This document shows positions 5,988 to 38,051 of a stretch of 64,000 nucleotides of DNA, piece after piece. This DNA is from Podarcis cretensis (taxonomy: Eukaryota). The stretch is from the NCBI GenBank assembly GCA_951804945.1, contig OX638150.1:55552001-55616000 (forward strand), in the 5' to 3' direction. The translations under genes were made by a program, and so were the position numbers. A model generated the notes under the pieces. That model searched no databases. It was not told the origin of the DNA and worked only from the letters and a program-made list of their open reading frames with translations. The first letter of the stretch is position 1; each line of letters begins with the position of its first letter.

Positions 5988-6151
5988 CCCTGGAATGAGA
6001 TCTGATGTAAGCACTTCACCATCTACCTCTTCAACAACTACGGGACCACCTCCCAAGCTCTGCCTTGTTTGCTCAGATGAGGCTTCTGGGTGTCATTATG
6101 GTGTCCTAACTTGTGGCAGCTGCAAAGTGTTCTTCAAAAGAGCTGTGGAAG
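5988..6151 (+). CDS. NR3C1: NR3C1 coding exon (human exon 3 equivalent): first zinc finger / P-box of the DBD
   Basis: ttccttag|CCC acceptor, GAAG|gtagga donor; encodes (S)[54 protein letters not shown](G), the GR-type DBD. Confidence 0.98.
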
Positions 6152-8046
6152 GTAGGATATATCACAATTATTTAAAACGTATAGTCTATATCTCTCCTCA
6201 AATGTTTGTGGGTTTTTATAAAGGTTTGGAGTTCATTTCCATGCTATCTCTTCCTATCTCTTGCAAAATCCTTGGTCTTCAGTAGCCATCTTCAAGTATT
6301 TTTCTGTGTGAGTGTGTGTATGTGCGTGTTAAGTAAGCATGTGAAAGCAGCCGGTGGGAATAAGCATTCTGGCTCTACCTCCTGTTCCCATTCCATTGCT
6401 TTTCTCAAGTTGGAGGGCAGACTTCTAAAGTGGGAGCCTTCTATACTTGTGGAAGCTACCTTCTTCAGATGTTCGCCCTCCAAATCATGGGTGGTGATGT
6501 GGGTGGAGCCAGAACTAGCTTGCTCTCCTAACTCTTCTTCATGTATTTACCTAACATGAAAGAACAAATAGCCAAAGAGGGCTGTTTTGTTTATTTTTAT
6601 TTACAATACAGCCCACTCTTCATTTATGGTATAGCTCACTCGTCATTGAATATTTGCAATCCCAGAGCATGGAGCAAAGTAATAAAAATAAACAGAGGAA
6701 AATAGTATACAATATTGCAAAAAAACATATAAACAGGCCCAAGAAATAGAAACTTAAAAATTATGTCATGAGAAAAGCAAGCAAAACTACATTAATAAAA
6801 TTAAAAATTTCCAATTTAACCAAATACCTAGGTAAAAGCAAACACAAGATGTTCAAACAGTTTAAACAACCAATGGTTTTAGCAAGTTCCCACCCTGTTT
6901 TTCACTAATGGTAGTCTGCTCTTTTCATTGTCTCCCCACACAAAGAGGGCCCCACTCTCTGCCAGACGATTCTCAGTGTAACTGCTTACCCAACCTCCAG
7001 GATACCACACCATAGTGTTGTTTACGATCCTTGCACACTAGGCATTGGAATCCCGCCCTCTCCCAATTAATATTAAGCAGGAACTTTTCCTGTATGGTTT
7101 ACAGCAAACTAAGCCAGACATGTAATGTTAAACATCCATAATACAATAAGATAATAAGTTGTTTTAAAACTTCTGATTTTATTTATATCTTGACAAGTTT
7201 TAGGTCAAGTTGTTTTCAATGTTTGATTTTATTTGTAAATAGATTCTAGTAAATAGACCCTGGTAAATAGATCTACTAAGGTTCACTCTTCTCCCATTGT
7301 TTAACACTGCTATTTAATTCAATATGGAAAGAATCTGCTCTTTAAAAGTTATAGTTGACTTTACTTTGCTTCCAAGGTTTGCTTATACTTGGATCTTTGG
7401 TTCCATAAAAATTCCAAAGGATTTACTTTGCCTGCTTCACAAGCTCCAAAAACCAAATAGTTTCCTCCCTGTTCTTTTAAAGTGGTAAAATCAATATGTC
7501 CTAAAGCAGCATTTCAAAACAAAATTTCCCAAACTGGATTACTGGCTGCTTGCTCTGGTGGTACCAACTTTAACCTAAAAAATGCAGAGAATACGTACTT
7601 CTGTTCCAGGAAAAAAGTATGGATAGACATTTTATAGTGAACTATTCCATAGTGAGTTTTTGAAAAAGCAGTTTACTTTTTTCAAAAGTTCTGTGTTGGA
7701 GAAATTATACAGTACAATAAAATGACTACTTGGATATATACATTGATATAAAAATGTGAGTGGTCACAAAAAGTACTCCAGTTCCACACTGATTTCCTAG
7801 CAACTGACATTCTGCTGCAGATGTTCAGCCTCTTTCTGTCTCATCCATCTCAGATTTTCATGGACATGTACCTATAGAATACTGGAACAATGTAGGCCTT
7901 CCTTATATTCACTCCTTCTCCAATACCTCTCATCTGACTGCAATTTTTTTGTGTAAACCCCCCCCCCTTCAGAGCAAAAAAGGGAAGTGGGAGACTTGCA
8001 GATGATTTAAAAAACCTCTTCCTACTTCCCTTTTAATTCACTGATA

Positions 8047-8408
8047 AGGTAAAGGTAAAGGTACCCCTGCCCGTACGGGCCAGTCTTGACAGACTCTGGG
8101 GTTGTGCACCCATCTCACTTAAGAGGCCAGGGGCCAGCGCTGTCCGGAGACACTTCCGGGTCACGTGGCCAGCGTGACATCGCTGCTCTGGCGAGCCAGA
8201 GCCGCACACGGAAACGCTGTTTACCTTCCCGCTGGTAAGCGGTCCCTATTTATCTACTTGCACCCGGAGGTGCTTTCGAACTGCTAGGGTGGCAGGCGCT
8301 GGGACCGAGCAGCGGGAGCGCACCCCGCCGCAGGGATTCGAACCGCCGACCTTTCGATCGGCAAGTCCTAGGCCCTGAGGCTTTAACCCACAGCGCCACC
8401 TGCGTCCC
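8047..8408 (-). mobile_element. Sauria SINE, young full-length copy
   Basis: tRNA-like head with B box GGTTCGAATCC, (ACCTTT)n tail, 14-bp TSD TTAATTCACTGATA (8033-8046 / 8409-8422). Confidence 0.92.
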
Positions 8409-8622
8409 TTAATTCACTGATATTGGGGTCTTAAAAGGGAAATGGGAGGGTGTTTGCAAAAAACCTTTGCAATTCTCTTCCTTCCCTGCTTAAGATTGGA
8501 TTTCAAGGGATTTTGTAAAGTGGACAGCCTGCTCACCTGTCAGATTTTACCTGTGAGTAAGATCCTGAAAAAGGTCTGGCCCTTGGAGCCAAAAAGGGAG
8601 GGGGAGCTTGAGACCAAAATTT

Positions 8623-8623
<1 letters not shown>

Positions 8624-8663
<40 letters not shown>
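8624..8663. repeat. (AC)20 microsatellite, NR3C1 intron 3
   Basis: Direct reading. Confidence 0.97.
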
Positions 8664-8665
<2 letters not shown>

Positions 8666-8987
8666 TCATGCCCCTTAAGCAAGACACTGCATTTTGGGAA
8701 GGAGGTGTGAGGGCTCTGGCAGGGTCCTAGAGCCCACCCATCTCCTTCTCAAAGCTGGGAAAGAGCTAACTAGGCTTTGGGAAAGGGGGGGGGCTGTAGA
8801 ACCCTGTCGGAGCCCTCATGCATCCTTTCCAAAGCCCAGCACCTTGCTTACCTGGCTTTGGGAAGGCAGTACAAGGGCTGCAGTTAGACCATCCTGATGT
8901 ACATGGATAGGATAGATAAGTCCATTTGTTTCTTCTCTTCCCCAACCCAACAAGTGCATGTTAGAAATTAAATGCTCATAATTATAA

Positions 8988-9161
<174 letters not shown>

Positions 9162-9766
9162 TAGAAAATCCTTCATTTTTGCATATATAAAAGATGGAAA
9201 GCCTCTTTGCACATTACTCATATGAAGATGTCCCAAATATAGAAAAAGACAGTGGGGACATGTTGCATCCAATGCCACACATCTTTTTCCTGGCCTTTCC
9301 TATGATGTGCAGCTGTGATGGCAGCCTGTACCCATAGACTCAGAAATCCATGCCTAATATGTGAACATAAGGGATGGGGGAAGCTGCATGATGTTGAGTG
9401 CAGGACTGGTGGCCTAGTCCCTCTGCTTCATTCTACACATTGATCCCATCACTGGAATAATGCATGAAGTGGGTTAGTGTAAGTTTCAATAGTGGGAGTG
9501 GTCCCTACTCACAATTCAATAGTCAATAATAACAAAAACTAATCCATTCAAAAGTATGTATTATAATAAAGATTACAAACTCAAATAGAGATTATAAACT
9601 CTAATAGAGATTACAAACTCAAAGAGATATGTATAACACAATAATTTGTTTAAAAGATTTTCTCTTTTTGACTCGACAGTAATGTTGATCCTTATAATTT
9701 ATCAGCTTGCAGATGGAGACTCAGTTTCAATCATAGAGCAGAAGTCAGAAGTCAGTTATGGATTGG

Positions 9767-9816
9767 AAACCAGGACAGGGCCCTGTTTCGATGTATTCAC
9801 CTTCATCAGCTAATTT
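9767..9816 (-). ncRNA. Minimal type I hammerhead ribozyme motif (antisense to NR3C1)
   Basis: - strand reads AAAUUAG-CUGAUGA-A-GGUG-AAUA-CAUC-GAA-ACAGGGCCCUGU-C-CUGGUUU: intact core, 4-bp stem II, palindromic stem III, GUC site, 7-bp stem I with two G-U pairs. Confidence 0.8.
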
Positions 9817-9940
9817 TTAAATTTGAAGTTTGTAAGTTTGAAGACTTTCGGATAAATATATCCTGTTATTTTCTATATATCTATATATAACAGGATATAT
9901 TTATCCGAAAATCTTCAGACTTACAAACTTCAAACTTAAA

Positions 9941-9993
9941 AATTAGCTGATGAAGGTGAATACATCGAAACAGGGCCCTGTTCCTGTCCTATT
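9941..9993 (+). ncRNA. Hammerhead ribozyme motif, sense copy in NR3C1 intron 4 (rearranged 3' side)
   Basis: CTGATGA 9947-9953, stem II GGTG/CATC, GAAA 9967-9970, then CAGGGCCCTGTTCCTGTC; stem I is only partial. Confidence 0.65.
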
Positions 9994-10450
9994 GACTATT
10001 GAATTGTGAGTAGGGACCACTCCCACTATTGAAACTTACATTGGCCTGAATTCTTGGTGTGCTTTTTGCTTGGTATATTTAATAACAAAGACTCCAACTT
10101 ATTTAACTTATTTAAGTGGGTTAGTGGCAATATATGCAGTTGTTTAATGTTTTCTGAATGACTATTTATCACTGTATATGTTTAACATATGCACGTCTTT
10201 CTTGGCAGAACTTAGATATTTCTTTCAACATACATTTCCAATCTTTCCCAGACTCTCATAAGAACTGTATTTTGCACTGAAGTAGTATGATTGGTATGCA
10301 TGCTAATCTCTTTTTTCCGTTTCTCTTCTTTTTGTTTTCACTTTCCGATTTCACGTATTTTCAGTAAATACTGTGGTTGGGAAAACCCCACACTTGGAGT
10401 GTACAACAGTTTGAATGCAAATCAGGAAGAAACAAAAATGTTGACTCATC

Positions 10451-10950
10451 GGGTGGTATTCTATACCAGTTCTAATCAGAGTTAGACCCATTGAAGTTAA
10501 TCAACACCACTAACTTCTGTTCACTAATTTCAGTGGGTCTACTCTGAGTAGCAGGGACGCAGGTGGCGCTGTGGGTTAAAGCCTCAGTGCCTAGGACTTG
10601 CCGATCGAAAGGTCGGCGGTTCGAATCCCTGCGGCGGGGTGCGCTCCCGCTGCTCGGTCCCAGCGCCTGCCAACCTAGCAGTTCGAAAGCACCTCCGGGT
10701 GCAAGTAGATAAATAGGGACCGCTTACCAGCGGGAAGGTAAACGGCGTTTCCGTGTGCGGCTCTGGCTCGCCAGAGCAGCGATGTCACGCTGGCCACGTG
10801 ACCCGGAAGTGTCTCCGGACAGCGCTGGCCCCTGGCCTCTTGAGTGAGATGGGCGCACAACCCCAGAGTCTGTCAAGACTGGCCCGTATGGGCAGGGGTA
10901 CCTTTACCTTTACCTTTTACTCTGAGTAGCACCTGGTTGAGTGCAATCCA
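10451..10950. repeat. Older palindromic repeat (CAGAGTTAGACCCATTGAA / TTCAGTGGGTCTACTCTG) interrupted by the 10554 SINE
   Basis: Inverted arms at ~10478-10495 and ~10529-10546; flanks GGGTGGTATTC / GAGTGCAATCC; similar decayed palindromes near 28330-28408 and 56533-56610. Confidence 0.55.
10554..10917 (+). mobile_element. Sauria SINE, young full-length copy
   Basis: About 6 differences from the 8047-8408 copy; 14-bp TSD TACTCTGAGTAGCA (10540-10553 / 10918-10931). Confidence 0.92.
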
Positions 10951-11814
10951 TTGTCAACGAAACTTTTAAAGTATGGATAGGTGATAACATTCAGTAATAC
11001 TGTATGGCAGGGACCAGTATTAACTTTATAATTGCTGTTCATTATCTGGTACTCTATTTTGTCCATTTTTGTAATTCCACTGTAAAATAGATTTTATATA
11101 CAGTATTGCAAAATTTTCAGGATATATGGTTCGTATAAGTAAAAAAAGTATGCAGGCAGCATAGATACTGTGGAAATGTGAATAAAAACAGTATACGGAG
11201 AAGTGTATTTTGAGCAGTTCATCTGGCATATGTATTCCATAGTTTAATTATAATGGCAAGCAGTTGTCAGGAAAAAAAAAATCTTTTTTGGTCCAGCTGT
11301 AGAAGAAACAAATTAAAATCCTGGCTATGGTGATTCATGTCTAGTAATGCATTCTATGTGCATGTAGGCATAATTCCATGGGGTATATATAGTTTTATTC
11401 ATCCATCCGTTATGTTGTCTTGGTTTAAGTGCAATGCAAAGGCCTCATTGAAACCATTCCATTCCAAAGCTGTAAATGGAATAAGTTTTTTAGTAATTTC
11501 CCCCAGGTGCACTACTGCTTTTTCTTCCTTTTCACATTTAAACCAAGGTTTCATTTTCTGTTCATACAAATGAAACCATAAAGGAAGAGCAGGAAATCTC
11601 TGTGGCCCCCCCCAACTCTTCTCTGTTCCAGCAAGCATGCCCAACGTTTGGGGATGATGAGAGTTGTCGTTCCAACAAGATTAGGAGGCCACAGGATTCC
11701 CTGCCATAAGGAGTCTGTTGTATGCCTGCAGCATAGAAGATTGCATTGATTGTGTTAGCAACGCTTTCTGGTTTTATTTTTTAATGTTGACTTTATTTTC
11801 TTAAAAATTTCTAG

Positions 11815-12093
11815 CACGAAAGACGAAGAAAAAGATAAAAGGAATCCAGCAATCTAGTGTGGCTGCAGGAAGAGAGACTGCAGAAAGTCCCACAAATAAG
11901 GCTGTTGTTCCTGCTTCCCTGCCACAGCTAACGCCTACTCTGGTTTCCCTACTGGAAGTCATTGAACCAGAAGTGATGTTTTCAGGCTATGACAGCACAG
12001 TACCGGACACAACTTGGCGTATTATGTCAACTCTCAATATGCTAGGAGGAAGGCAAGTGGTTGCTGCTGTGAAATGGGCAAAGGCAATACCAG
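11815..12093 (+). CDS. NR3C1: NR3C1 exon 5: NLS/hinge and start of the LBD
   Basis: ttctag|CA acceptor, CAG|gtttgt donor; 279 nt; [13 protein letters not shown]...[15 protein letters not shown]...[20 protein letters not shown]. Confidence 0.98.
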
Positions 12094-29900: not shown

Positions 29901-30271
29901 TGGGGACAAATCCTATATTATGCTGGTGTATGGCATTATTAAAAAGCTTTTTTTGTTATTTTTATCACAGTAATTTTAAACAGTGTAAAAAAAAAATTAA
30001 AACAAGTGACTCCTGTTTAAAAATAAAAAGTTGTAGTTTTTTATTCATGCCGAATAACTCTGTAGTAACCATGTCTTTTCACCTACACAGTGAAATGTTG
30101 GATTGTAAAATCTTGTGTGGAACTGTTGAGCATTTATTTTTCATTTTAAATTTTGCTGTTCTATTAAATTCAAAGCCACACGTCTGTACAGAAGTTGCAG
30201 TAAATGTAAGCCATTTACAGCAATGCTGAATAATGGACAAAATGACATAATAAAAACCTGCTTTTTCATTA
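23934..30271 (+). other. NR3C1: NR3C1 long 3'UTR (~6.3 kb)
   Basis: Blocks resembling the mammalian GR 3'UTR as recalled (GCACTACATGTGGTTTA ~24064; GGGAAGTTGTGCCTTTTATAGCTATTACTGTCTGG ~24389; AAAATAGCTTGTATAGTGTA ~26401; terminal block ~29860-30271). Confidence 0.8.
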
Positions 30272-30320
30272 CATGTTCAAGTACCCTTTGAAGTAGGGTT
30301 TTTTGTTTTGTTTTGTTTCT
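30249..30320 (+). terminator. NR3C1 distal polyadenylation signal AATAAA (30249-30254) with a downstream U/GU-rich element
   Basis: AATAAA at the end of the conserved UTR block, followed ~45 nt later by GGGTTTTTTGTTTTGTTTTGTTTC; a second AATAAA lies at 30022-30027. Confidence 0.8.
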
Positions 30321-31917
30321 TGTACAGTGCGTTACAGATGGAGTTCAGCCTTCTATTAACCTACAAAAATTAAGGCTGCAATCCTATAAACATTCACCTG
30401 GGAGTCTGTGTGTGGTTGCATTAGAGTACTGTCAGTGAAAATAATACAAGCAGAAGCATGCCAAAAACTTACTGAAAATTTATTTTTATCTTGCACACGA
30501 AACCCCTCCACCATCTTCTCCCCACCTCCCTGCTCCGAATTATCAGGGTGGTGACAGATTCTTGGAATTTCCAAGAGGGTTGAGGGAACAAGCACGAACA
30601 GAACAGTTTTATACCTCCTGAGAGCAGTTAATACCTTTTAAATATGACGGCAGTGACCTGACCCACCCTTCCTTATCCCAGTGGGGGCAGATGAAGAATC
30701 CAGGAATTAAAGACGAGCAACCATTCTGCTTATTCCCCAAACTGAACACAAATAGAGCGCTTTCTGCTCCTGAAATAGCCTCCTGAGAATACAGTAATTC
30801 ACTAAATGAGGAAGGCATGCAACAGGATTTTAAAAGAAATGTGTGTGTGAATGACAGAACCTGAGCTCCGTTGCCAGCTAAGTGAAACAAAACCTCCGGT
30901 CAGGGTTAAAGCAGCAGGGTTCACTGCAGAATGAGACAAAGGACTTTCTTGGATAAAATAAAAGCATTAAGTCACAAATGAGAATCTCACTGAAGCCACA
31001 GTTTTAAATTAATGGATTGGAACCAAGGCAACCAAAGCTGCTGAAAGACCGTGCTAATGACCTAAGTGAGTTGGCAAAACAACTTAATTTGTTTTAGAAA
31101 GAAACAAGTGGACAAATGCAGTTGCGCTTCTAATGAAATAGTTGGGTGAAATCTATAAAACAGTTGCCTTCAACTTTGCTAATGCCGCATTTAAATTGGA
31201 GCAGCACCTGCACTGAAATACATAAAAAGAATGACAAAACTATTAACTTGGGAGATTTGGGGGCTGCAGCCTAAGTCTCGCTTTAGCCTCCACAGAGAGC
31301 TCTGCAGTGGCTTTCATTTACCTGGGAGTCAGACCCAATGACCTGTAAAGGACAGACATGTGCAGCAGATTCAGACAGATCCCCCCCAAAAGTGGGGGCA
31401 CCTTGGACAAATTTCAGGCTTGTCTGAGGTGAAGGGGGATCTCTCCAAAGCACCGGAACTGAAGTTGGGGACCTCTAAAGTGATTGAGGCCAATTCAGAT
31501 GTTTCAAAATCTACACAAAAGGTGTGCTGGTAAAAATCGCCCTATTAGGCAAACAACATGGTGGTGTGAAGAGGTGACCATCTAGCTCTTTATTAGAATG
31601 ATTCTACCAGGTCTCTGCAATCCCCATGCTTCGTGGAAATGTTCTTGAAGTGACATATCTTGTTCTTGTCTATTCTGTGTTCTTTGCAAGTACTGCTTGT
31701 CTTTAAAATGCTGGACATTCAAGTCCTTTTGCCCTTGTGCCACATTTGTTCCTCTCAAATCAGCATTATGAGTCGCTTGTGTGACCTTTAGTCCCATTCA
31801 CCATTACTTCCTAACCACTACATCCAGCCTCCTGAAATCTTGCTGCTTTCTTTCCTAGAGGCACCTCCATAATTTTTGCTATTTCCATAAATTCAAAACA
31901 TTCTGGTTAACCTAGGC

Positions 31918-32053
31918 CAGGCATAGGCAAACTCTGCCCTCCAGATGTTTTGGGACTACAACTCCCATCATCTCTAGCTAACGGGACCAGTGGTCAGGGA
32001 TGATGGGAGTTGTAGTCCCAAAACATCTGGAGGGCAGAGTTTGCCTATGCCTA
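31918..32053. mobile_element. Palindromic hAT-type MITE
   Basis: Near-perfect arms CAGGCATAGGCAAACTCTGCCCTCCAGATGTTTTGGGACTACAACTCCCATCATC and its reverse complement; decayed relatives near 11620, 19340, 38800, 45130 and 52640. Confidence 0.85.
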
Positions 32054-35017
32054 GCCTTGGGGTTTGATGGCTGAAAGACCCTGGTCACCCTGAAATGATG
32101 AGTTATGATAGTAGGCGATTGCTATTATGAGTTTAACTCTTTTTAGAAGTTTCAATTATATTGTTTTAGTATCGATATGTTGGCCACCATTGTCTGCTTT
32201 GCAGGAAGGGTGGGATATAAACACATTTAACGAATAAAAATACCTTGCAAATCTTTAGTGGAAGAGGATATAAGCGGAGGGGCTATTTTTATTAGAATAT
32301 TTCCTTTTGAATTCTAAATTTCCTTTTAGAATATTTTGGAGTCCCTCCCATAATAATCTATCAGGTCAGCTAAAGCACAGTTAGTGATCATTGAAATATT
32401 TGTAAAGCATGCTACAAATTCAAACATTATGCTGCAATAAGAGGAGTGGTTTCTCAAGACTTAACTAGGCTTTGAGAGGAGGGTGTGTGGAGATGCAAAC
32501 TGAAGAGCTGACTCATTCCAGGAAAAGACTTCTTGTTGATTCTTTATCTAAAACCAGATGGAATGGTTTGAGAGAAGCCTGCTGAGAGAGCATTTAAGCC
32601 AAACACTAATAGTACAGGGCTAATGTAACAACATGTGAGCTGTTCCTTCTGCCTAGCATGGTATGTCTAAAGAGCCAAAGACTTGCACCCTGGTAGATGA
32701 ACCAGACATAATAACTGAACTGCATTCCTGTTCTAAAAACAAGTACAAAATACAAAAAGCTGCCTTCAACCTTCCCCTTTTAAAACAAATTCCATGTACT
32801 TGGCCCTCTTATCTGCATTTTGGCACTTTGTCAGGGCTAGTTTTGAAAAACAACAGGTTTTCTGGAATATGGGTCATGAGCATTGTCCGATCTTTAGAAT
32901 ATTTTGACTGGAGCTGCAGTCATTAAACAAACAAACAAAACATATTTTTGAAATAAGAATTATCCATACATTTTAATAATATGCTCATTAGGTAATGGCA
33001 GAGGAAAGCTAGTCAAGCCGTTAATCCATCTATCTCAGTTTTGTCTGCACTGACTAGAAGCAGCTCTCAACGCTCTCTTGAGTCCTACCTGGAGATGCCA
33101 GGAACTGAACCGAGGACCTTCAGAATACCCTGCAGATGCCCTATCACTAAGCTGCAGCCCTAAATTGAAGCCTCTGTTTGAGGCAAGACAGAATCTTCAT
33201 CCAATCCATGTGTCAATGATCCTAAAAGGCCACACCCTCAGCAACAACAAGCCAGAGTCCAGCAAGCTACTCCAGGCCAGCATGACCTGTGTATTCCTTT
33301 CCTCTCCCCCTTCCTACACTTCATTTCCTTGCACAGCTGGGGCTGCTACTGAACTTTGACTTTTATTTAAGTTCAAATCCTCTTACCCAAAAAAAAAAAA
33401 AATGGTAAAAGGAAAAAAAAGACTTCTTAGCTGTAAACTAAGGACAACAAATAAGCTCATCAGTACTTCTTCGGTTACATTTTCCACCAGGCTCAGCTTG
33501 TTTAGAGATGGAAGGGAGGCTGCCTGCTGGAAGAAAGGGCATCCCAAGCCCTGCTCTTTCATCCCACTCTTTGGAGGAGTTGGGTCCTGAATTTTGCAGT
33601 TCCCATGGAAAGCAACTTGAAGGCCGCTTAAATTATGAGGCAATCTGTCAGCTCCATTTTGAGTACAGCAACTAATGCACCTTTGCCATGCTAAATAAAT
33701 ATTCAATAATTAGCCCTTGATAAGGCAGTGGGCTCCATGGTTCTTTTATGATTTGGGGAAAGAAGTCGTTTTTGCCAATGTGTTCACTGTGCCCTAAAAC
33801 TCAACATCTTCCCTGATTATTGGCCATGATGGCTTGGGTAAGATGAGAGAGCTGCAGGTTCACCATTACTGCTTTAAAAGCCTCCACCCAGCCATTCCTA
33901 TTAGCACATTTAATAACCAGCAGCCATTGGGAGCCAGATTATATTGCTTCATCTCTTCCCAAAGGTCTCCCCACTCTGCTAATCTTTCTGTGCAGTGTGG
34001 GGAGGGAGTGGAACAACTTGCCTCATGAATTCTCACATTGCATGAAGTCTTATTGCACCACCACCACCATCCCCTAGAAACCTCTGGAAGTGAGGAACAA
34101 ACTCCATGTGAAGCAGATATATCTATTCTAAGCCATGCTATAGTACACCAGCAGTATGCAGATGTTGCTACACAGAATCTATTTCAGTTGTGGCTGGGCT
34201 ACACTTTATGTCAGTCCAACAGACACACACAACTAAATACTAATTAAAAGGTTATCACAATTCTTGGAAAGCACATGTTTATATATTAAAACCAGTCATG
34301 TTCATTGAATTCATGGAAGAACCTATGATAAGACCAGTGAACAGAGAGGTTCATTAAGCAGTAAATTCCTAGCCTTCTTGTATGAAATAAAACCAGCCAT
34401 TATGAGAACAAGATCTGACGCCAGGAGTGAGCTGTGCTTTGATAGGCAACAGAATGCAATTTCAGCAAAATTCAGGGTGACTAACCTATGAGCTGCCATG
34501 TTATTGAACTCCAGCTCATTGATCATTGATCAAGGATGTTGTGGGCTGTAGTCCAATAATACCTGGTGGGTAAGGAGTCACCCTGGGGTTGATAGAACTT
34601 CTACTGGATCTGACGAGATAAAAATTATGGACACTTCAAAATTTGAGAAAGATAATTATCAAGCAGTAGATAGGATTGGAGTGGTGTTATTTTATAAGAC
34701 TAGCCACCAGCCAGAATCTCTATTGCCAATATGTGGGTGATTTGCATGGTATATTAGCAAAGCAAAAGCCACAACACAGATGATCATTATTCACTGACTG
34801 CATGTGTGAAGGACCTACCACAAATTGATATTTCAATATAGGAATTCTGTATCATCATCTGAGAAAGATCTCACATTTAGCTGAGCATTGGCTGACCAAC
34901 TGATGTACAGGTGCCTTGTTGTGTACATAAACTTTCTTTACATATAATGTATATATAATGACCAACCCTTTTTCTTTCGTCTGCTGTACCAGATTTGAAC
35001 ACTAGCAAACCTGAATA

Positions 35018-35620
35018 CCATATTTTTCGCTCCATAAGGCGCACCTGACCATAAGGCGCACCTACTTTTTTGGGGGGGGGGGATTCAAGGGAAAAAAATT
35101 ATTTAAAGGGAGCGCTGAGCAGAGCCTGTATGCATCTCAGGCTCTGCTCAGTGCTTCCTTTCATGAGCCGCGTGGAGTGTGTGTGCGGTGCTTGCAGGCT
35201 TTTCCCCGAGGAGGGAGAAGGGCAGCCCGTCACTGATGGGCTGCCCTTCTCCCTCCTCAGGGAAAGGCCCCCAAGAGCCACACACACACTCCGCGCAGCT
35301 CTTTAAAGGGAACATGGGGCTTTTGCAGGAGGTGGGGGGGAAGTGAGAGACCTTCGCTCTGTCCCTTCCCCCACCTCCGGCAAAAGCCAGGGATAGCCGC
35401 ACGAAGCCTCCCCAGGGAAGCGGGATGAAGGCTCCCTGCCCTCCTGCGGAGGCTTTGCGGGCTATCCCAGAACTGCTCAGGAGCTTGTTGGGGCTGGCGG
35501 GGGAAGCCCGGGTCCCCCCCCCCAGCCCCAGGGACCACACATTTGCTCCATAAGATGCACAAACATTTCCCCTTAGATTTTAAGAGGGAAAAAGTGTGTC
35601 TTATGGAGAGAAAAATACGG
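35018..35620. mobile_element. Tc1/mariner (Tc2/Tigger-like) non-autonomous DNA transposon
   Basis: TA|CCATATTTTTCGCTCCATAAG ... CTTATGGAGAGAAAAATACGG|TA; repeated subterminal CCATAAG(G/A)CGCAC motifs; GC-rich interior with a hairpin at ~35208-35258. Confidence 0.85.
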
Positions 35621-36129
35621 TAATTTCAAAGCTAGTGAGCTGGACTCCATGCCCAGGGCCCCTTACTAGTCAATTTACATTGCCTCTATAATAATCAGGG
35701 AAAAGTCAGGTATAGCAGTGCCACTGCAGTGCCAGCCACAAAGCTCTCTTTGCATGTACTTGGGCCTTAGGCATAATGTCTCATCACACCTAGGAACAAT
35801 TTACTATGAAATATAACTTAAGTAACAATAGATTTGCATGGATACTTTAAGATAAATATCTTTTCCAGTATAAACCTAGTCTTCAGGACTATGCCTTGTA
35901 ACAGGCTAGACACCACAAGTAACATGGGTGGGGTGAAAAGTAACTGGTTTTTCTTTTCTTTTTCTTTTTCTTTTTGTAAAAAGTTTGTCCTCCCCTCCCC
36001 TTCTTTCACGGTTCTCAGAAAAAGTGCTTCATGAAACCTGAGCAGTTAGGAGTTGTGGTCTCATTATTTATTTTATTCCATTTGTGAACCACTTCCTATG
36101 GAACATCTAAAAGTGATTAGCAACAATAT

Positions 36130-36720
36130 TGTTATGAGTTGCAGGTGCCAGGGTTTGTGGTGCCAGATTCCCCTACATTACTGGGTCTGATAGATAATGT
36201 AATTACGTTTGGGGTGTTAACATTGCCTGCCAGACACTGGATCTAGCAAAGTGTTAAAATACAGGCCAAATCAGTTTCCGATGTTCACGAGATCGCCTGA
36301 GAGACAGGCTATCAACAGACAACAAATACAGGGAAGGTGGGCCATCAGCAAAGTCTTTTTGCCAGCCAGCAAATGGATGGAGCCCCTCTCTGAACAATGA
36401 GAGACAAAGCAGAGTGGAGAGTTTTAGGATTACAGTTCGGAATGATGTGGGCTGGAGGAAAAAAGTAGCAATCTTTAAAACACAGCAAGCTTGAAAAGAG
36501 ATTCAGAAAGCAATGGCTGATTTCTGTTTGGATCCAAGAAGAAGCAAGAACCTCTTGGGAGTGTTAATGCTGTGAACCCCACCATCGTAGGCTCAGGTTG
36601 TATATGTGTGTAAAAAAACCATGTATCAGAAAGACTCCACTGTGGCTTATTTTCCAAAAGGAAACAGACCCTGGGTAAAGCACTCCTGGAACCCCCTGGA
36701 GATTGAGGGTGGCATGTTAT
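36130..36720 (+). mobile_element. Possible solo LTR
   Basis: Begins TGTTA, abrupt compositional change, degenerate polyA-like TGTAAAAAAACC then U5-like segment; 3' CA end and TSD not resolved. Confidence 0.35.
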
Positions 36721-38051
36721 CCAGCATGCCACAGCTCAGGCCTAAAATTGTAGTTGCTCCAAAACGAAATATAGGGACCCTTGTGAATAGCACCAAGCAG
36801 GTAGTGGTGCAGCTTGGACAGGCAGACCAGATTGTGGGCCTGAGTCTGTGCCAACAAACTGTCTAGTTGTGGGCTGTGGTGGCACGCTAGCTGCGCAATT
36901 TGTTGAGCATATGGCGCAGGATGCTCTCTGCCAGGTCATGGATAAATCGCTACGCACAGCTCACCTTAGCCAGGCTTGCTTTCACCACCTCCTGCTTCCA
37001 TGGCTGGGAACTCAGGAAAAATGAGGGGCCGCCCCAGTGAATTGCACTCAACGACAAGGGAGTCTAGGGGTGCTACAGTGGTGCAGAATGATCCCAAGAT
37101 GGTGCCACTCATGTTTCTTCCCAGTAATCCTATGCGTGGGGAACTTGGCAACAAAAACAGACTGCTGAATGAGCACACGGGTTCTGCGCCCATTTTTTTT
37201 ATGGTACATTAACAGCAAACATAATAAGCTGTAAATGGGCATATTTAAAACATTTGCAATATTTAACAAATAATCAAATGAAGAAGTGAGTAAGCACATT
37301 ATTCTTCCATTTCTATATGCAGTTTAATATATCTACAGGGTTTTGCAGAAGACTGGATGACCTAGCACTACAAAAATGCTCAAAAGAGATGTACTCACTA
37401 GTTCATAGAATGTGTTCTTTCTTGGAATTACTTTAGATAACCAATATTGACAATTCTAGAAGAGAGGGTCATGGTGCCTCAGACCCAGAGGCTTAGGGGA
37501 AAGGGAGGGAGAAAGAGATTTAAAAGAATCCTATCTCTTTAGAAACCAGCCTTGAAGCTTGAGCATTTCTGGCATGTTTTTGCATTCGGGAAAGCACATT
37601 ACGTATTTTTTTCAGAATTCACAACTTGGAGATATAAATGTGTGTTCTTATACATCACTGGATCACATCCGAAATATAAATTTTAAGTATGCACACGGAC
37701 ACACATAGCACACATTTGGGTGTGATTTTTTAAAACCAGTATTTCTGAATTATTATTAGCAGCTGGTTAGTGAATAACATTGTTATTCTGGACTTCAATA
37801 TAAACATAAAGCCAGGTTCTGTGTAATGTAGCCTGTTGCTATTTAGATGCATTTTATTCACAGCAGATTAAATTTGTATTTTAGAAGATTTCTGGCTCTC
37901 TGCCTATCCTCTTCTTTGCAAAGAAACAGTGGACATGTACACTGTAGTTGAATTAAGTACTTAGTACCAAAATGAAAGCCTTACCGTGGTTAAGAACTGT
38001 TGTCACAATTTTTGTGTGGGTTCCTGCCAGAAACTGTGCATTACACAGAAG

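Follow-up and report, generated by a model that had tools for sequence, protein, structure and literature searches.

We found that the pair of inverted hammerhead motifs in the window, the 64,000-nucleotide stretch of Podarcis cretensis DNA analysed here, very probably belongs to an inert fossil, left in the glucocorticoid receptor (GR) gene when a Penelope-type retroelement, non-coding and high in copy number, inserted as a fold-back into the intron behind the second zinc-finger exon. The insertion consists of two head-to-head copies of one non-coding repeat, one of which carries an internal deletion and a one-sided tail. The motif pair is owed to the way in which this repeat inserts and not to the host gene, and the element is an ordinary further case of a known kind of Penelope insertion. 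Architecture and motif type, and these two alone, point to Penelope, no autonomous element with this hammerhead having been recovered. The copy itself is a non-autonomous or severely 5'-truncated insertion of the Penelope type, not an autonomous element.

Results

The insertion lies in an intron of the glucocorticoid receptor gene

Two exons on the plus strand of the window encode a steroid-receptor DNA-binding domain. Searched as separate queries, both matched the GR best, the first zinc-finger exon with 83.7 bits against 68.9 bits for the mineralocorticoid receptor and the second with 81.6 bits against 75.1 bits. A GT donor stands directly after the second zinc-finger exon, at 9133. Because this exon ends at 9132, the element lies in the next intron, which we take to be intron 4 by human exon numbering, and the plus strand is the sense strand of the gene. 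The exon matches thus bear out an initial annotation of the locus, which had placed the motifs in a GR intron with the plus copy in the sense orientation. Downstream of the second zinc-finger exon, the insertion starts at a distance of 348 nt and the palindrome with 95-nt arms that holds both hammerhead cores lies at 856 nt. The coordinates of all features are collected in Table 1.

Table 1. Features of the GR locus and of the insertion (window coordinates; a point marks features without strand)
Feature	Position	Strand	Remarks
First zinc-finger exon	about 6037-6153	+	GR is the best match
Second zinc-finger exon, glucocorticoid receptor	9016-9132 (start approximate)	+	translation; best PDB matches are GR, 81.6 bits
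Left 13-bp target-site duplication AAGTGGGTTAGTG	9467-9479	.	identical to 10114-10126; repeat depth climbs here
Minus-arm 3'-terminal segment	9480-9528	-	half of the outer inverted repeat; depth 12,000-45,000 vs 163 in the flank
Repeat body between hammerhead and terminal segment	9529-9766	-	absent from the plus arm
Complete minimal type I hammerhead motif	9767-9816	-	helix I 7 bp, helix II 4 bp, helix III palindromic, GUC
Palindrome left arm	9775-9869	.	inverted-repeat pair
TA-rich 17-nt spacer, head-to-head junction	9870-9886	.	the two arms share one element position as their start
Palindrome right arm	9887-9981	.	inverted-repeat pair
Sense-of-GR hammerhead motif	9941-9993	+	core and helix II intact; native helix I 3' strand gone
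Deletion junction, plus arm only	9982-9989	+	extra T and CCTGTCC replacing ~230 nt of the family body
Plus-arm terminal segment	9990-10040	+	other half of the outer inverted repeat
73-nt tail, one end only	10041-10113	+	most abundant family part; no left-end counterpart
Right 13-bp target-site duplication AAGTGGGTTAGTG	10114-10126	.	single-copy depth resumes at 10124

The surroundings hold further structured repeats. A 364-nt inverted pair, 8046-8409 and 10553-10916, is 98% complementary and brackets the second zinc-finger exon together with the insertion. This pair could loop out the exon in the pre-mRNA, with exon skipping, back-splicing or circular RNA as possible consequences. Two hairpin-like stretches, at 8702-8822 (GC 0.58) and 10471-10552, gave weak, sub-threshold Rfam matches to microRNA precursors and are probably other repeat-derived palindromes. 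ARAGORN reported no tRNA-like gene in 7800-11200.

Two hammerhead motifs on opposite strands

The 64-kb window holds exactly two copies of the 34-mer CTGATGAAGGTGAATACATCGAAACAGGGCCCTG, inverted relative to each other and located at 9776-9809 on the minus strand and at 9947-9980 on the plus strand. The 34-mer runs from CTGATGA to CAGGGCCCTG, and its expectation in shuffled sequence is 0, which confirms the inverted, hammerhead-like pair described by the initial annotation. The conserved core is present in both copies, with C3-U4-G5-A6-N7-G8-A9, G12-A13-A14, the A15.1-U16.1 pair and H17.

In the minus copy, helix I joins AAAUUAG (9816-9810) to CUGGUUU (9773-9767) through 7 bp, two of them G-U pairs. 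The core is formed by CUGAUGA (9809-9803), which is followed by an extra A at 9802, and by GAAA (9789-9786), and helix II is the short stem-loop GGUG/AAUA/CAUC (9801-9790). The helix III strand is the palindromic, self-complementary CAGGGCCCUG (9785-9776), which can fold into a 4-bp hairpin or, as a dimer, into a 12-bp duplex. U16.1 corresponds to 9775 and C17 to 9774, and the predicted cut falls between 9774 and 9773.

The plus copy is rearranged, and its repeated CCTGT, 5-bp helix III, GUC site and weak helix I are all found as first described. Its alternative register pairs 9970-9974 with 9983-9987 as helix III and places the end of the GUC at 9988; helix I then has three contiguous pairs only (G9946-C9989, A9945-U9990 and U9944-A9991) before a U-U mismatch. 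In the native register the site is GUU and helix I is absent. All three helices are thus found in the minus copy, and weakly at best in the plus copy, whose helix I is 3 bp long.

An RNAmotif-style descriptor run over both strands of the whole window had the minus copy as its sole match. Relaxing helix I to 3 bp brought in the plus copy as well, by way of the alternative helix III and the GUC at 9988. The strict descriptor matched none of 150 dinucleotide-matched simulated windows and the relaxed one matched 2%. Because the descriptor match is unique in the window and the simulations had no strict match, the motif pair is confirmed as more than a chance occurrence, and the claim that the minus copy is a complete minimal type I hammerhead with a palindromic stem III and a GUC site is upheld. 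The initial annotation had also pointed to hammerhead model searches on both strands, and here the outcome was divided: the descriptor recovered the minus copy, and the Rfam hammerhead models gave no match at E<=10 on either strand of 8000-12000 or of 9740-10010. The Rfam miss weakens the assignment to the hammerhead class without excluding it; minimal Penelope motifs were themselves first found by descriptors.

To define minimal Penelope hammerheads, Cervera and de la Pena (2014, PMC4209133) added four traits to the core. Taking the class criteria from that source, we found the extra A (9802 in the minus copy and 9954 in the plus copy), the G10.1-C11.1 pair and the palindromic helix III. These three marks support the earlier assignment of the motifs to the hammerheads of Penelope elements.

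Architecture of the insertion

AAGTGGGTTAGTG is found in the window only at the two places listed in Table 1, and the insertion between these duplications spans 634 bp (9480-10113). Within it, the 95-nt arms of the inverted repeat are 97% complementary and flank a 17-nt spacer, with the cores in the outer parts of the arms; if one indel is allowed, the palindrome reaches 9771-9986. The arms mismatch at three positions, all of them transitions. Because these mismatches are confined to the inner part, the two hammerhead segments are identical. A further, outer inverted repeat pairs 9478-9528 with 9990-10040 over 51 nt at 100% complementarity.

Read from the centre outward, the minus arm comprises the inner segment, the hammerhead, about 240 nt of body, the 51-nt terminal segment and the target duplication. 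The plus arm read in the same direction comprises the inner segment, the hammerhead, eight odd bases (9982-9989), the terminal segment, the 73-base tail and the duplication. The two copies are about 400 nt and, including the tail, about 235 nt long. The duplicated CCTGT of the plus arm has the appearance of a scar, left by an internal deletion of roughly 230 nt that would have cost helix I its native 3' strand. We assign this deletion to the plus arm because the minus arm and other family copies retain the segment.

No ORF was found in any frame of either arm, nor was a reverse transcriptase or GIY-YIG endonuclease, and the frame opened by the AUG within CUGAUGA reaches a stop after 16 codons. 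Searched by BLAST, the remainder of the 64-kb window returned no further copy of the element. Pattern scans of metagenome and viral contigs, collections in which lizard DNA is probably absent, yielded no family copies either and have no bearing on the family. The repeat body also contains a tandem array of 19-nt units resembling AGATTACAAACTCAAATAG, three to four in number, at 9555-9630, where depth is about 30,000-38,000 in organism A (see below).

A dispersed family with an old copy at this locus

Logan contigs of three related organisms (A, B and E) were aligned to 9200-10500, and word depth was taken as a proxy for abundance, not as a copy count. Depth in the unique flanks was 163-192 in A, 27-28 in B and 53-60 in E. 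Within 9464-10123 it peaked at the tail, at 116,351, 20,835 and 67,079, respectively, and in the hammerhead bin (9772-9815) it stood at 33,877, 3,035 and 8,953. In all three organisms the element exceeds its flanks 40- to 700-fold, with a step at both duplication boundaries. The element is thus one of a dispersed, multi-copy family with a bias towards the 3' end and hundreds of copies per genome, and a depth peak at one end is what 5'-truncating retroposition is expected to give. With hundreds of copies per genome, the location of one of them in the GR gene needs no functional explanation. Depth over the inner part of the palindrome (9812-9944) is 10-50x the single-copy level, far below that of the hammerhead and the 3' parts.

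The left junction is crossed by single-copy contigs of all three organisms, with 0, 1 and 3 differences over 306-310 flank-side bases. At the right junction, contigs of single-copy depth lead from the tail into the unique flank in A, B and E, with 1, 6 and 9 differences. Since both junctions are present in all three organisms, the insertion is old and predates their divergence. Downstream of the insertion, after 10357, the contigs of A, B and E carry 14 extra bases (TTTGTGCACTCCTT) that are missing from the window; either a small deletion in the individual or lineage of the window or an assembly slip would account for this gap.

The loose ends of other family copies, including those before 9989, join the ~240-nt body straight to the terminal segment, and therefore the order of the minus arm is canonical and the plus arm is the deleted one. 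Most family copies read ..GATACTTCC just upstream of AGCTGATGA, compared with ..AAAAATT here, which places the copy at this locus in a minor subfamily. Both the majority 5' strand (..CCAG, 4 bp) and the local version are able to pair with CUGG, which is the one hint of compensatory change in the helices of the family. Among family contigs of at least 90% likeness, no variant in 9766-9821 rises above 10%, and five positions just beyond this interval differ from the family majority. Most family copies part from the local sequence 2 nt upstream of CUGAUGA; the family therefore has subfamilies with unrelated sequence 5' of the core, both of which can form helix I.

Folding of the transcripts

In a plus transcript of 251 nt, the predicted hairpin has a free energy of -160.7 kcal/mol (z-score -25). 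Forcing the sense hammerhead into this transcript gave -87.3 kcal/mol, a penalty of about 73 kcal/mol. These predicted energies agree with the proposal, made in the initial annotation, that the upstream arm sequesters the sense copy. For the isolated minus motif, the hammerhead fold (-5.5 kcal/mol) compares with a minimum of -12.1 kcal/mol (z against shuffles -0.26), and in the minimum-energy fold both the cleavage site and the GAAA box are base-paired. The isolated plus motif gave -5.6 kcal/mol for the hammerhead fold against a minimum of -8.3 kcal/mol. The self-duplex of helix III, made up of the 10-nt palindrome and a closing A-U pair, has 12 bp and -24.3 kcal/mol. This duplex agrees with the dimer mode described for the class (PMC6765202). 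Two sense copies would have to meet for such a dimer, and either transcript strand of the window carries a single one.

RNA run X23 contributed 19 reads, a number too thin to exclude rare cleavage. All were 90-99% alike (none at 99% or above), 18 of the 19 were partial fits, and no pile-up of ends was seen among them. We take these reads to come from other family copies; zero reads fell on the unique flanks, that is, the locus itself has no coverage in this run.

Alternative explanations

An intronic hairpin of this size might act on its host as double-stranded RNA, through A-to-I editing, small-RNA processing or an influence on splicing, with the hammerhead cores uninvolved. The duplex is near-perfect (95-nt arms at 97%, with the folding energy and z-score given above), it belongs to an insertion that starts 348 nt downstream of an exon and is nested in the 364-nt inverted pair that brackets this exon, and the insertion has been kept in three related organisms. 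Such retention is equally expected of neutral intronic DNA, however, and no sign of editing or processing appears in run X23, which has no reads from the locus. The Rfam microRNA matches, for their part, lie far below the gathering scores and are of the generic long-hairpin type. We consider a role of this kind unlikely. MicroRNA genes were rejected as candidates in their own right, the precursor and other Rfam matches in 8000-12000 and 9740-10010 being sub-threshold and reflecting a generic long hairpin.

The perfect 51-nt inverted repeat, 9478-9528 with 9990-10040, and the inner palindrome that adjoins it could also suggest the relic of a DNA transposon, a miniature inverted-repeat element with 51-nt terminal repeats and a nested palindromic insert, in which the hammerhead strings would be incidental. 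The right repeat, however, stops 73 nt inside the insertion and is not terminal, and a target duplication of 13 bp would be unusual for a cut-and-paste transposon. The depth of the family is highest at one end, as it is for 5'-truncated retrocopies. The full hammerhead descriptor is matched here and by no simulated window, and the motif bears marks specific to Penelope. A DNA transposon origin is accordingly very improbable.

We give almost no credence to the sense motif as an active, regulated ribozyme, in which helicases or editing would open the hairpin and GR pre-mRNA would be cut after 9988: its catalytic core is intact and the sense strand does offer a GUC site and, as an alternative helix III, a stem of 5 bp, but helix I has 3 bp, loop-loop contacts are impossible, the hammerhead fold lies above the minimum (-5.6 against -8.3 kcal/mol) even in the isolated RNA, forming it against the hairpin costs 73 kcal/mol, a second sense copy for a dimer is missing, minimal Penelope hammerheads are poor or inactive alone (PMC4209133; PMC11167929), run X23, which does not cover the locus, holds no RNA ends, and the rearrangement resembles a deletion scar. 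The monomer competence first attributed to the sense copy thus finds no support, given a helix I of three A/U-rich pairs and a fold short of the minimum; neither does the suggested RNA-level switch on GR pre-mRNA, given a hairpin that is about 73 kcal/mol better than any fold containing a hammerhead. Scarcely any weight falls, likewise, on a scenario in which the deletion gave a dimer-dependent transposon hammerhead a stable helix III of its own, and opening or editing of the hairpin led to cleavage of a fraction of the GR pre-mRNA after 9988, lowering receptor output in the lizard lineage. The inert, tolerated insertion, which the initial annotation had held as its own fallback, is a better reading than the switch.

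Comparison with known hammerhead-bearing elements

The closest parallels to the motifs are the minimal hammerheads of Penelope elements. These sit in the pseudo-LTR, near the 3' end. Reptiles are among their reported hosts, and frequent pairs of motifs on the two opposite strands, separated by 100-700 bp, have also been described (PMC4209133). Alone they cleave poorly or not at all (PMC4209133; PMC11167929), and activity as dimers is credited to Lunse et al. 2017 in the summary given by PMC6765202. The motifs at the GR locus share with them the type I topology, the CUGAUGA...GAAA...UH core, the unpaired nucleotide between A9 and G10.1, the G10.1-C11.1 pair, the palindromic helix III, a short helix I without loop contacts and a high copy number, as well as the opposite-strand pairing at 100-700 bp and the reptile host. 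They differ in their long palindrome, which gives a 12-bp intermolecular duplex, and in a helix II of 4 bp rather than 6-8 bp.

The insertion as a whole resembles the complex Penelope insertions described by Craig et al. 2021 (PMC8557442). Penelope insertions are strongly 5'-truncated, often adjoin an inverted 5'-truncated copy and carry a tail at one end only (PMC8557442). Applying the criteria of that paper, we found that the GR locus has a duplicated target, a 5'-truncated copy standing inverted beside the main one, and a tail on one side, together with flanking inverted repeats like those of the complex insertions. In contrast to the latter, both copies here are extremely short and one is internally deleted.

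A lizard element of the same type, Poseidon PAc of Anolis carolinensis, was studied by Frangieh et al. 2024 (PMC11167929). In that work, the purified protein cleaved both strands of DNA and extended each of them, and internal initiation of reverse transcription accounted for the tail; the PAc hammerhead did not cut unless the protein was present, and no ends at its cut site were seen in public RNA-seq data (PMC11167929). Compared by description, PAc and the present insertion have in common the Penelope-type element of a lizard, the tail at one end and a hammerhead a few hundred nucleotides upstream of the 3' end of the insertion, and extension of both DNA strands by the PAc enzyme would yield inverted copies. 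The PAc ORF begins at helix II, whereas no ORF follows the motif here, and the tail measures 73 nt against the usual 30-40 nt in Penelope and PAc insertions.

Two other groups of hammerheads are more distant. Non-LTR retrozymes (PMC7229834; bioRxiv 10.64898/2026.07.22.740005) are likewise non-coding repeats with a type I hammerhead and are kin of the Penelope pseudo-LTRs, but they form direct tandem repeats that give circular RNAs, unlike the single inverted pair seen here. We rejected a retrozyme, as the two copies in 64 kb are on opposite strands and no transcript holds two sense ribozymes. The amniote intronic hammerheads HH9 and HH10 of Rfam resemble the present pair in that one copy is intronic and in the sense orientation; they are single-copy, deeply conserved monomers with tertiary contacts and curated models, in contrast to a dispersed repeat that has no Rfam match.

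Discussion

The observed architecture suggests that the two copies, each a 5'-truncated version of the 3' region of the element, were placed head to head in a single integration event. As a likely route, the Penelope enzyme would have cut both DNA strands and primed reverse transcription from each. Each copy brings along the minimal hammerhead of the family, and the locus therefore has one motif per strand. In transcripts of the family, any activity of the motifs would depend on dimers joined by the palindromic helix III or on help from the element protein. Later, a loss of ~230 nt would have taken the 3' strand of helix I from the plus arm.

In the GR pre-mRNA, the left arm would be transcribed first, and the bases of the right arm would meet their partners one by one as they emerge. 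The arms may thus zip into a hairpin of roughly 100 bp before the sense motif is completed, and this hairpin would be removed along with the intron. We infer that the motifs at this locus do nothing for the host. Were the switch true after all, the locus would present a rare transposon ribozyme domesticated to control the transcript of a hormone receptor.

Read instead as an inert fold-back insertion, the locus is a worked example of how integration of the Penelope type leaves a fold-back with one hammerhead motif on each strand, and its value is mainly one of annotation: when a hammerhead pair turns up close to an exon of a lizard genome, it should first be taken for copies of a repeat.
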